Positions 56,775 to 61,744 of a stretch of 64,000 nt of DNA are shown here, piece by piece. How positions within the stretch are numbered: the first letter of the stretch is position 1; the number at the start of each line of letters is the position of its first letter. The DNA comes from Paraphysomonas bandaiensis. Its lineage: Eukaryota > Protista > Chrysophyceae. A program made the position numbers and the translations under genes. The DNA is taken from the NCBI GenBank assembly GCA_965644295.1, contig CBFFRP010000075.1, forward strand, positions 62,001 to 126,000, given 5' to 3'. Below the pieces are notes generated by a model. The model had not been told where the DNA came from. It saw nothing but the letters and a program-made list of their open reading frames with translations, and made no database searches.

Positions 56775-56827
56775 GTAATACACCACTCACACCACACTAT
56801 AAATCTTAAGCTACACTCATAAAGGAA

Positions 56828-57009
56828 CATACATACATACATACATACATACATACATACATACATACATACATACATACATACATACATACATACATAC
56901 ATACATACATACATACATACATACATACATACATACATACATACATACATACATACATACATACATACATACATACATACATACATACATACATACATAC
57001 ATACATACA

Positions 57010-57043
<34 letters not shown>

Positions 57044-57210
57044 CATACATACATACATACATACATACATACATACATACATACATACATACATACATAC
57101 ATACATACATACATACATACATACATACATACATACATACATACATACATACATACATACATACATACATACATACATACATACATACATACATACATAC
57201 ATACATACAT
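56828..57210. repeat. (CATA)n microsatellite, about 380 bp
   Basis: Near-perfect array with the same unit as the 37-kb array on the opposite strand. Confidence 0.98.
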
Positions 57211-57532
57211 CATCAGTACGTAGAAATTTCAGTATTCGGTTTTCTGTTTCTCCTGAAGATTCCTTATTTCTCTGAAAACTAGTATGTTTTAGAGGGAAGT
57301 CAAGTGAGCAAGTGTCCGGTGAAGTGTATACGAGTAGTTAGTATGTAGAATTTGTAGAAATAAACTCGCAGTTAGAAATCACTCTCAGCGTGTTCGAACA
57401 CCGACAACAATACATATCTCCGACCTCCCTCGTGATCAGAGGATATACTATAATCGTTGACAGTTGCCGGGTATGTCTCGTTGAGTGGCATTCGATCGTC
57501 GATTGGAGTGTAGAGAATATACATACGCAGTG

Positions 57533-58435
57533 ATGATTGAGAAGCCGCACCTCAACTTATCGTGCTCCACACTGGGCATGGAGACTCTCACACCTATTGC
57601 TCCGCCCTTCTTAATGCCGCGTCCTTATGAGATTACGAAGCCCGTGTGGTGCCAGTCCCCTTCCAACAGAGTCAAGTTTGAGGAGTGTGGAACTGGTCGT
57701 GAACGAGACATTGGAGAGGAGGCTTTTTACGTAATCGGCCGTAATGAAAGATGTAGCATCATTCTTGAGGAACTTATGGTTTCAAGGTGTCATGCTGTTC
57801 TACTTCACAGTGGTGTAGGGGATGTATACCTCATTGATCTTGGGTCTAGTCACGGCACTTTCATTGGCACTCACCGATTGATTCCCTATACTCCAACGCT
57901 TGTTAAAAGGCATTCTGTGATGAGATTCGGCTCATGGGAGAAGCAGTATATTATTCGGGAATACCCAAAGCCGGATGATGTTCTCGCGAAGTCGAAGTAT
58001 TGCGAGTCCGTTGAGGAGCAGTTGGCGATGCTGAATGCTTTCCGCAACATCACTTGCCTTTCACCCACCAGCTCTCAGGATTGCTCCATGAGCGTGGATG
58101 AGCCCCCAGCGCAGATGCCTGTACAACTCACGGAGCCCTACCGCCCAGCACGTCGGTGCTCGTATGCGGACCTGGGAGATAGCAAGCGGGAGGTGATTGA
58201 TATTACTCATGAGGACGCACTGCACCTACAGCTTGCTCATGCGCAGGAGGCCTTGCTTGTTCGCAAGAATATGCGTCGTAGCTTCTCACTTGATAGCAGC
58301 TACATAAGTCCCTGTGTGCGCCGCTTGTCTTCGAATTGTGGTGATGGTGGAGGGATGTGTCGCAAGAAGGTGCGATTCTCTGAGGGAGACCTCTCCGTGT
58401 ATACAACAGATGCAAGTCGAACACTGGGTAACTAG
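57533..58435 (+). CDS. FHA-domain protein with RVxF motif (NIPP1-like PP1 regulator)
   Basis: YVIGRN...VSRCHAVL...LIDLGSSHGTFIG...MRFG FHA motifs; C-terminal RKKVRF. Confidence 0.8.
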   Translation: MIEKPHLNLSCSTLGMETLTPIAPPFLMPRPYEITKPVWCQSPSNRVKFEECGTGRERDIGEEAFYVIGRNERCSIILEELMVSRCHAVLLHSGVGDVYLIDLGSSHGTFIGTHRLIPYTPTLVKRHSVMRFGSWEKQYIIREYPKPDDVLAKSKYCESVEEQLAMLNAFRNITCLSPTSSQDCSMSVDEPPAQMPVQLTEPYRPARRCSYADLGDSKREVIDITHEDALHLQLAHAQEALLVRKNMRRSFSLDSSYISPCVRRLSSNCGDGGGMCRKKVRFSEGDLSVYTTDASRTLGN

Positions 58436-59299
58436 AAATGTAACAGATTTGTATTGCTTCGATTGCCGGTGACGTGGTCATTATAGTGACTTGCCACTTC
58501 TCATGTTATAGATATGTGATATCATAGATCATCGTTTCATATTTTAAACACATACTTCTTTAATAATAGTTGTTCTCAACACAGATTAGTTATGTAGTTG
58601 TATTTTCATTTCGCAATATATAATGTCATTATGGAAAACTTCTCTTCTGTTACTGGTAATGATCGTATTAAATATTTAATTTCTTGACAGTCGTTCTCTT
58701 TAAGGTACTACAGTAGCAGCAAAATCAAAAGTAGTTGTCCATTGTTAATACATTTGGTTAAGTACGTCATGGCTAGGGAACAATATATTGATTCGTGAGC
58801 TTAGTATATTACATTAGTGTACATTCATTTTCGTATTACTCACTCTTATTTTCAATATTCTCTTTCATGGTCAAAGATTGGGATGCTGTAACCCATATGA
58901 GTCTTTGCCTATACTCCTATACCTCAAATGTGCATACAGCGTACATAGTACATGTACATATAACATACATATCTAGTTGTTGAGGTGCTTTGTGTGTTCA
59001 TCTGGCATTAGTCATTCAAACAAATGTTTTCGTTCTGTGTGGCTATCCTATTATCATCTATATATTCTTCGATTTCACTAATGCCTATTTACCTCATTGC
59101 ACTATCTCTAGATCACATCCATAACGCAGTCCATATGCTAAACAATCACACATTCGGTATCTATCGTAAGACACATCGCACAAAGCTACTATATATTTAA
59201 ATCAATGTGTTTTATTAGTGTTGTCACAATGCTAGAAAAATATTTGCATGTCCCATTTAAATTTTTGCCACGCAAACAGATGTCGGTCAACAGCTACTC

Positions 59300-60447
59300 T
59301 TACGCACCAAGGATGGGATGAGTCTCATAAACATTTCCAGCGGTTTTGATAACAGCAGGTGCTTTTACGATCTCAGCAATGTCGGCCTCTAGCTTAGCAG
59401 TAATGTTGTGTACTTTGTGGTCCTTCGCAGAGAGTCCAGCACGGTAGTCAGCGATAGCCTTGGCATACACCTCACCAACAACATCCTTTCCACGCTTGCC
59501 ATTTGGTCCAGCAGCGAGTGTGGCAATGGCTTGAGAGAGTGCAGCGTCCTTCACTTTACGATCAGAGGAGACGACCTGAAAGGCCTCCGACTTGATAGTT
59601 TGCATCATATCCGTGCGGATAGCGGCATTAGTTGCCTCGTTGAGTGAGGCTAGTGCATCCAATTTCTTCTGAATGGCGCGATGTAAGTCGTTCTGGTTGG
59701 TGAGGTTGAGGGCAGTAGCTTGAGCAGCGGCAACCTCATCAATACCAGTGAACATATCCTTGAAAACATCCTTGGCGTCGATAAATCCTTCAGAGCTGTC
59801 AATAGCATCGTTTATCTCGGCAACCGCCTTGTCATCGACGTCCTTCCAAAAGTTGGCGATATACTCTCCGATCCAGCTTGTCTTCTCCAAGTAAATAGGT
59901 AGCACCACCATGTCATAGGCATGCCACATCATACAGAATGCTCCGACAAGATAAAATTTATAGTCGACCACTATAACCTGTAATACATATATTCAAACTC
60001 GAGCTTCATTGTATCAAAAACTTCACCTCATGAGCGATCATCGGGGAAGCGAGAGAAATCGACACAGGGAGTGCCCATTTCCAATCGTCAAGTCCCAAAT
60101 ATTGGAGAATGCCAACATCCTTACTATTAACTTGCTCTTTCTTGGACTCTAATAGAAAATATATTAAATATAGCAATATATGTGCTCGTAAACTGACCGA
60201 TGACATTAATCAGCGCCTGCTGTTCCTCGTCATGCTGCTCTCGTGCAAGAATCTCTTCCATCTGAGCCCTCAATCTAGCTTTTCTTTCATGTTCCTGACG
60301 ACGAATATACGACACCTCTTCGCCTTGCTCCTTAGTTGCAAGGTCGACCATGTGTCTGGATACAACAGCCAGGCGACCATTATGCTTTAACCCACTCCTC
60401 ATCTGAGGGGCAAGGGCAGTCACGCCTCTCCTTAATCCATTCATCAT
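59300..60447 (-). CDS. Mitochondrial ATP synthase subunit b-like with N-terminal IF1-like segment (exons 60198-60447, 60027-60148, 59300-59977)
   Basis: Arg-rich presequence, charged IF1-like helix, two hydrophobic segments, then a long Ala/charged helical stalk (AIQKKLDALASL...KVKDAALSQAIATL); both GT-AG introns keep frame. Confidence 0.75.
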
Positions 60448-60919
60448 GTTGCTTATTCGACAGTGAGAATGTAGGGGCTGCTTGCTGTGCTGCACTACAC
60501 AGTAATAACACCAAACAGTAAACCAAACCAACTGATTTATTAATTAATTTATGTAGTCACTGTACTGCTGTACGTGTGTGTTGATGGTGCTGTTTTTTCC
60601 TATAGCAGTGTGTTATATACTGCTGTACACTGTACCATCCCAGTAGGCTCATAGCATCCTCATTCGAACTTTCAACAGACACATTGAAACTAAAACTGAA
60701 AATATGGAACAGATATATACAGCAGTAACCGACCTGTACATGTACAGCAGTACGATGTACGTATATATCCAGAGTGGGTCTCATATATCTGCAGCACAGT
60801 GTTCTGGTACGTACCAGAACATATCTCAAATTCAACCCGTTTTTTTCTTGTTTGAGTGCGAAGCTGCTCTGCAGTTGTCGTGTAGGTGTATCCCGCACCA
60901 TCACATCCCATTAAATATC

Positions 60920-61744
60920 ATGGCCACATCACTAAGAAAGAGGACTAGAGAGGCTCTTGAAGAAGATGAAGTTCGACATGCAGCAGAAGTAGGATATAGG
61001 GTCGATAGTGGTGTTCCGCTACACCCGGCTGTCACCACACAATTAGCTGAGATATCAGGAGAGATTGAGAGACTGCGGGAACAGTTTCAGGACTTTAGAG
61101 ATAAGTTGCCTGACATTATTTGTGATGCAGTTTTATCCAAACTCCGAAGTCGATTGCAACTTCGCGGTGCCGTGACAGTTACACCTCTGGTTTCGAATTC
61201 ATCAATTTCGACCTCGGAAGAACGAGTCATTCAAACCATCCAAGATGTATCGACATCCAGTAACCGAACTCCTGCTCTGCCGCAACAGTGTCATATTTCT
61301 GGAACAGAGGAAACCCAGGAATGGTGGCGAACTTTTCGTTGGAACGACGACTTAATAGATCATTTCGTTCCTCCTAATTGGCATTTTCCACAACGCATCA
61401 GTGTAAAGACTTTGTGGGACCTCTGGCTTTTTGGTAATCGACGAGAAGGAATCCGACCCTATCGCCTTATAAATAGACTACACGATTTGACAAAGGCTGA
61501 TAGAAATGGTCCTCATCTACGAGCAAGAAAGACTATGGAATTCCTTCTTCAACGAGTATGGGAGTGTACTGAAACTCATATCCGTGACATTACTCTTAGT
61601 AATGGAGATGATTTATTTGGTAGGGTATATGAAAATGCTTTGAAAGAATTGTATAGCGATGTGGGAACTGAATGTAAGGATATTGGGAATTTGAGTTATG
61701 GTAGTTTCTATAATAGGCTATGTTCTAGTAGTAAAAGTAAGTGA
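60920..61744 (+). CDS. Protein resembling the C-terminal domain of stramenopile Crypton elements
   Basis: SGVPLH plus a coiled coil, then HFVPPNWHFP...LWDLWLFGN...IRPYRLI; no tyrosine recombinase domain. Confidence 0.5.
   Translation: MATSLRKRTREALEEDEVRHAAEVGYRVDSGVPLHPAVTTQLAEISGEIERLREQFQDFRDKLPDIICDAVLSKLRSRLQLRGAVTVTPLVSNSSISTSEERVIQTIQDVSTSSNRTPALPQQCHISGTEETQEWWRTFRWNDDLIDHFVPPNWHFPQRISVKTLWDLWLFGNRREGIRPYRLINRLHDLTKADRNGPHLRARKTMEFLLQRVWECTETHIRDITLSNGDDLFGRVYENALKELYSDVGTECKDIGNLSYGSFYNRLCSSSKSK

Follow-up and report, generated by a model that had tools for sequence, protein, structure and literature searches.

Can a subunit of the mitochondrial ATP synthase carry the inhibitor of its own enzyme within the same polypeptide? 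The question is raised by a gene of the chrysophyte Paraphysomonas bandaiensis located in a 64,000-nucleotide stretch of contig CBFFRP010000075.1 (hereafter the window, meaning this whole stretch), where the initial annotation, made from the sequence alone, proposed that a helix resembling the inhibitor protein IF1 is fused to the N-terminus of ATP synthase subunit b.

The gene lies on the minus strand and is composed of three exons (60447-60198, 60148-60027 and 59977-59300) whose joined frame remains open for 349 amino acids and encodes in one protein, in this order, a presequence, an IF1-type helix, a helical spacer, subunit b and a C-terminal extension. Both introns are 49 nt long with GT-AG borders and have GC contents of 0.24 and 0.31, vs 0.46-0.50 in the exons. 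Intron 1 (60149..60197, phase 1) lies between the IF1 module and subunit b and is spliced in the RNA runs X8, X11 and X17; intron 2 (59978..60026, phase 0) is defined by the frame and the RNA contigs. Both splice junctions are present in contigs of these three runs and absent from the DNA run X6, and a single 1176-nt contig from X17 spans all three exons, which corroborates the proposed joining of exon 1 to exons 2-3 across the 60198/60148 junction. The RNA contigs outline a transcript at 59196..60524, an extent whose true starts are not fixable from contigs; its end at 59196 is a loose one of the poly(A) type. The spliced product is identical to a protein (P0223) from the MMETSP1103 transcriptome, labelled Paraphysomonas (Chrysophyceae). 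We searched the exons separately and carried out the full-length analyses through the database proteins P0001, whose N-terminal domain is near-identical, and P0223. Our results confirmed a three-exon gene transcribed as one mRNA with one reading frame. Mis-splicing and chimeric assembly were ruled out by the RNA contigs of the three runs together with relatives of the same architecture, and a single-genome oddity by the presence of the module in 41 of the 44 relatives found through the b domain.

The first exon encodes three elements. Residues 1-32 (60352..60447, minus strand) form a predicted mitochondrial presequence, judged from its composition (six K/R, no D/E) and the R-x-M-V processing-type site at its end; it is poorly conserved in orthologs, and being Arg-rich and free of acidic residues it agrees with the mitochondrial type named in the initial annotation. 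Residues 33-59 (60271..60351, minus strand) make up the IF1-type inhibitory helix, assigned from profile matches, conservation and the AlphaFold models, both of which predict a helix for this segment. The conserved helical spacer, residues 60-83, reaches the end of the exon (60198..60270, minus strand), as outlined by conservation and the models. The helix originally singled out was located at 60342-60271 on the minus strand, where it corresponds to residues L36-L59 in frame after the presequence. In register with residues 19-45 of bovine IF1, L36 corresponds to F22, E44 to E30, Y47 to Y33 and I48 to F34.

To what extent the databases recognise this helix as IF1 depended on the kind of search. 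Exon 1 alone retrieved nothing relevant in Pfam or PDB, and the ESM Atlas had no match for the N-terminal domain; for a full-length relative its only match was subunit b. The cut-off of the Pfam IATP family (PF04568, 25 bits), whose model includes regions missing from the fusion, was reached by none of the family, with 11.7 bits for the P0001 domain and an E value of 4.2e-5 for the best member. IATP nevertheless matched 12 of 18 domains at E<=1 and 33 of the 71 N-terminal domains at E<=0.1; every other Pfam family matched three of the 71 at most. When a profile was built from these 71 sequences, the top 11 of 177,635 PDB sequences were all IF1 chains (best E 2.1e-4), their molecules being named ATPase inhibitor or IF1 and including the chain of the Toxoplasma entry, and the match to IF1 was gap-free over residues 22-50. 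With a full-length profile, all 28 PDB matches were subunit b, IF1 or the plant P2 protein. The predicted IF1 signal is thus present at the profile level and falls below the Pfam cut-off. The N-terminal profile also weakly matched the plant complex I subunit P2 (At2g27730; PDB 7a23_n, E 0.3), the zeta inhibitor (E 0.69) and an IF1-labelled chain in the mitoribosome entry 6yw5.

Next, we examined which positions of the helix are kept. In bovine numbering, the family has L/F/I at position 22 (96%), K/R at 25 (100%), E at 26 (87%), E/D at 29 (100%), E at 30 (100%), Y/F at 33 (100%), I/F at 34 (97%), R/K at 35 (85%) and E/D at 38 (100%), figures that are partly circular because members were picked by similarity to the domain. 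Selection through the b domain gave a consistent picture, as 41 of 44 long relatives carry the module. Among these relatives, mean conservation, as majority fraction, is 0.58 for the IF1 helix, 0.54 for the stalk and 0.25 for the presequence. The IF1 core pattern is found a single time when all six frames of the window are read, and never when the mature N-terminal domain is shuffled 200,000 times, a weak control since the pattern was written after the family was seen. The homology to the long inhibitory helix (residues 21-47) includes E30, which forms a salt bridge to beta R408, and Y33, the two residues credited with most of the F1 binding (PMC10066207). The column conservation also upholds the E-x-x-E-E-x-x-Y pattern among orthologs. 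As for the gap-free alignment initially put forward, E26, E29, E30, Y33 and R35 stand, but Q27 (15%) and E40 (30%) are unconserved in the family, as is L42, and the bovine L42 is not kept here. A charged helix merely resembling IF1 and gained as an N-terminal extension could account for the low scores (24 bits at best against PDB) and for the failure of exon 1 alone to find IF1, as charged helices give spurious matches; this reading by convergence or chance is largely refuted by the fact that IF1 accounts for every one of the top 11 PDB matches, that the register is gap-free and that the fusion partner is a subunit of the same complex. Judged by its sequence, the N-terminal module is derived from IF1.

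The module is not a complete IF1. Of 31 full-length orthologs, 26 have a processing-type site of the form R-x-[MFL]-[SV] just ahead of the helix, so the mature protein is predicted to start near IF1 residue 19-20, and the presequence would be cleaved there. With such a start, the short helix at positions 14-18 that contacts gamma would be missing; this region is absent or different in the IF1 structures of Toxoplasma (PMC7785744) and Euglena (PMC6930080). The short helix is part of the minimal inhibitory region as published (A14-K47), and bovine IF1 lacking residues 1-19 is a weaker, reversible inhibitor that keeps partial directionality through F22 (PMC10066207). None of the 71 members has a His at the column equivalent to position 49, and the long C-terminal coiled coil is missing from the fusion. 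The metazoan type of IF1, a separate soluble protein with an oligomerisation coil and the pH-sensing His49, therefore does not describe this module, which is fused to b. In common with IF1 (ATP5IF1, yeast Inh1; PF04568), the protein has a presequence followed by a long inhibitory helix in gap-free register, with the five residues named above and hydrophobic positions 22, 34 and 45 kept. It differs in being covalently joined to a membrane subunit, with a fixed 1:1 stoichiometry with the enzyme, and in the predicted lack of residues 1-19, of His49 and of the coiled coil. It is an IF1 homolog in its helix, not a canonical IF1.

The region between the helix and subunit b had been described as a linker of about 35 amino acids. 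Its in-frame connection to b was upheld, but most of it is a conserved helical segment rather than a plain linker. The spacer has conserved hydrophobic positions and a conserved K62-equivalent; in the alignment-based model the helix is extended, then comes a turn followed by a second amphipathic helix, at odds with the one continuous helix of the single-sequence model. Exon 2 (60027..60148, minus strand; residues 84-124) then encodes a charged linker of low model confidence, the N-terminus of b and the first transmembrane helix. This linker comprises about 12 variable residues (~84-95) with no conserved Arg-based processing site, and in the present protein it has no Arg at all. Across orthologs the distance from the motif to the b core is 56-65 residues; Arg is missing from the 16 residues ahead of the b core in 23 of 38 orthologs, P0001 as the closest relative among them, and the sole linker Arg column, occupied in 37% of orthologs, is followed by an acid.

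The C-terminal part is ATP synthase subunit b by every test run, as had been claimed. The first part of exon 3 (59510..59977, minus strand) encodes the second transmembrane helix and the long peripheral-stalk helix. Exon 3 scored 30.5 bits against Pfam Mt_ATP-synt_B (PF05405, cut-off 21.7), and a profile of 44 relatives matched solved subunit b chains in PDB (best E 1e-9). Hydropathy supports two transmembrane helices, the alignment-based model (H108-124 and H132-264) shows them with a stalk helix of 130 residues, and the top two Foldseek matches were chain B of the Tetrahymena and Toxoplasma ATP synthases (E about 0.1). What the earlier reading missed is that the last part of the exon, down to the stop codon (59300..59509, minus strand), encodes a further ~70 amino acids that form two helices in the same position as the subunit-h (F6) extension described on b for all SAR lineages (Sinha and Wideman 2023, PMC10214729), and that are present and conserved in relatives. 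For this extension, an F6 chain ranked third (E 0.087), and two relatives matched Pfam ATP_sub_h (E 0.11) and ATP-synt_F6 (E 0.063). These matches are weak, and the correspondence to the SAR subunit-h fusion is taken from the published work. The protein shares with SAR b-h a nuclear-encoded b, two transmembrane helices, a long stalk and a C-terminal extension that is probably h-like, and differs from it in the extra N-terminal IF1 module, which is limited to one clade. The pan-eukaryotic survey reports the b-h fusion only: its section on b-h contains no such N-terminal domain and its text does not mention IF1 (PMC10214729).

To place the fusion in a phylogeny, we built quick trees of 45 and 130 rows from the b-h region alone, excluding the module. 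All module-bearing proteins, among them those named as Paraphysomonas (two cultures) and Chromulina nebulosa, fell in one clade (SH-aLRT 95 and 93, respectively). The module is absent from Fibrocapsa japonica, which we take to be a raphidophyte, and from about 30 other full-length SAR-type b proteins. Inside the fusion clade, P0056 and P0095 lack the module, the latter loss being seen in three samples (L010-L012), and P0069 and P0093 have an eroded motif with the spacer helices still in place. The simplest reading of these sequences would be one gain, two losses and two erosions. Since four clade members have lost or eroded the motif, it appears dispensable in some lineages. P0056 comes from a transcript-type contig (L001:37-939) in which the presequence is in frame with b and exactly the IF1 module and spacer are missing, with a short A/G-rich repeat at the join; its nearest relatives, P0045 and P0053, have both elements. 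Such a contig may stem from true loss, from a paralog or splice variant, or from a template-switch artefact. Two further sequences, P0003 (filed under Symbiodinium microadriaticum) and P0077 (MMETSP1396), nest among chrysophyte sequences and are probably chrysophyte contaminants of those data sets.

An equivalent phase-1 intron right after the module was deduced in loci L002-L005 and in many read-through fragments, which fits an origin in which a one-exon IF1 gene with its presequence was joined to b-h, and the fusion presumably arose in this way. We also searched for a free IF1 paralog. The search returned 28 short proteins, and those examined were exon-1 read-through fragments, with subunit b directly downstream in the loci examined; no free paralog of the module was found among proteins of 41-131 aa sharing exact words, a result that does not show absence.

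A gene for a TLC-family ATP/ADP transporter (PF03219) lies beside or near the fusion in three different relatives, at L004:2635-4114, L005:3760-5282 and L008:1-113, and is not beside the fusion gene in the window. There, an intronless-looking ORF of 316 aa with an FHA domain (57485-58435, plus strand; Pfam E 1e-14) is convergent with the fusion gene, and an ORF of up to 346 aa (60704-61744, plus strand) is divergent from it. The 269-aa core of the latter had no Pfam match; by eye we presume a resemblance to stramenopile transposon-associated proteins. Upstream of the fusion gene, the region 60560-60830 contains a CAGCAGTA-type unit in short repeats of direct and inverted orientation, and DNA contigs pile up over it with loose ends at 60783 and 60829, which suggests a dispersed repeat. 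A long TATG-type tetranucleotide microsatellite at about 56800-57200 yields spurious MYVC-repeat ORFs.

Inhibitors held on the ATP synthase are known from other organisms. In Toxoplasma, the IF1 C-terminal helix stretches from F1 as far as the partner monomer's subunit b, locking one rotational state (PMC7785744); in Tetrahymena, ATPTT2 anchors the helical hairpins of IF1 to Fo, and its authors propose that binding is permanent instead of switched by pH (PMC7583250); in Euglena, IF1 density reaches subunits b and d (PMC6930080). As in these systems, where particular alpha/beta interfaces are inhibited, the chrysophyte module would hold IF1 near the membrane sector, in Toxoplasma likewise via subunit b; unlike them, it forms one polypeptide with b, whereas their IF1 is a separate, non-covalently bound protein. 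The Tetrahymena IF1 also ends in a helical hairpin, and no homology between this hairpin and the spacer was detected. In bacteria, the epsilon C-terminal domain and the alphaproteobacterial zeta are inhibitors that sit permanently on the enzyme and act as a pawl against hydrolysis, as the fused inhibitor would. Epsilon, however, is unrelated and belongs to the rotor, whereas the fused inhibitor is IF1-derived and on the stator; zeta is a separate subunit, not part of the stator b. These intrinsic inhibitors are reviewed in PMC9317440.

We propose that the N-terminal module is a low-affinity inhibitor held one-to-one beside F1 by a covalent tether, a reading to which we assign a probability of roughly 60%. 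An IF1 module comprising presequence, inhibitory helix and short helical tail in one exon would have joined b-h via the phase-1 intron in an ancestor of the clade that includes Paraphysomonas and Chromulina. After import, the presequence would be removed and the inhibitor left starting near IF1 residue 20, with the beta contacts equivalent to E30, Y33, F34 and F22 predicted to be kept and the gamma-locking short helix gone; it is expected to be weak and reversible, like bovine IF1 cut likewise. Since subunit b has its N-terminus at the matrix face of the membrane, each ATP synthase would have a single copy of the inhibitor, which the spacer would keep close enough to reach one alpha/beta interface, either of its own monomer or of the partner monomer in the dimer. 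There it may work as a pawl, entering F1 upon rotation in the hydrolysis direction and being ejected once the proton motive force returns, and proximity would replace control by pH-dependent oligomerisation or by expression level, as in the bacterial epsilon and zeta subunits. We infer both inhibition of F1 by the helix and its continued attachment in vivo. That IF1 can span the distance from F1 to the membrane sector follows from its non-covalent Fo anchoring in Toxoplasma, Tetrahymena and Euglena, and by analogy the reach from the spacer to F1 is plausible. Against a tethered inhibitor, the two models disagree on the shape of the spacer, the short helix of the published minimal region is missing, the bovine L42 is not kept, the Pfam IATP cut-off is reached by no member and four clade members have a lost or eroded motif.

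Other readings accept the IF1 ancestry of the module and assign it a different fate. Fungi and plants have mitochondrial polyproteins that matrix proteases cut, and by this analogy the IF1 module could be cut from b after import and act as a free IF1, the fusion serving co-expression or co-import, as the initial annotation had also considered. The variable linker of low model confidence at ~84-95 would offer room for such a cut, and exon 2 opens with a charged stretch resembling the mature N-termini of unfused b proteins. However, the linker and spacer lack a conserved Arg-based processing site, the one Arg column precedes an acid, the spacing of the motif to the b core is constrained, and a released peptide, being similar to the Delta1-19 form and having no coiled coil, would inhibit poorly on its own. 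We consider cleavage quite unlikely and, on the missing processing site, favour the tether, one of the two readings originally offered. The module may instead no longer be a brake and have been co-opted for dimer bridging, crista shaping or assembly of F1 with the stalk. The persistence of the spacer helices in P0069 and P0093 agrees with this, the Toxoplasma IF1 contributes to the dimer interface (PMC7785744), IF1 affects oligomerisation and cristae (PMC12989075), and the weak match to plant P2 (E 0.3) suggests that IF1-like helices can be redeployed. But the best-kept positions form the F1-binding face (E30, Y33, F34), and binding at this face blocks catalysis in all the solved structures compared, so that structural co-option appears unlikely.

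A gene with exon 1 as a self-contained unit of presequence and IF1 could also yield, by retention of intron 1 or alternative splicing, a free IF1 or an IF1-less b in addition to the fusion. The P0056 contig, which lacks exactly the module that its close relatives have, would fit such a second product. Among the RNA runs X8, X11 and X17, however, there was no intron-retaining or alternative contig, and the depth over the intron bins equals the exon share alone; contigs drop rare variants, so their silence is compatible with a dual product, which we nonetheless regard as highly improbable.

The IF1-b fusion of chrysophytes is real, conserved and apparently undescribed, as we found no description of a natural IF1-b fusion in the full-text literature available without subscription. 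In the mitochondrial literature compared, every IF1 stands as its own protein, and how many ATP synthases are braked depends on its dose, pH state or anchoring. A covalent IF1-b would instead place the inhibitor in a one-to-one ratio on every enzyme, including those making ATP, and this fixed ratio offers a natural test of the debated question of whether bound or nearby IF1 hinders synthesis as well or hydrolysis only, with the natural losses inside the clade as built-in comparisons. Several chrysophytes can be cultured, which makes cryo-EM feasible. The fusion would add a covalent tether to a series that begins with free IF1 in mammals and continues with non-covalent Fo anchoring in alveolates, and would represent a ready design for a one-directional motor. 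If such an intrinsic pawl has truly taken the place of free IF1, the chrysophyte ATP synthase would be the first mitochondrial enzyme whose inhibitor is covalently built in, and the fusion would serve as a molecular marker of the clade. For the chrysophytes, which are abundant bacterial grazers, we tentatively suggest, at slightly less than even odds, that a stator-bound pawl has replaced the free, regulated IF1 in their mitochondria, and that IF1-b-h may thereby make the ATP synthase, one-to-one, an essentially one-directional enzyme.
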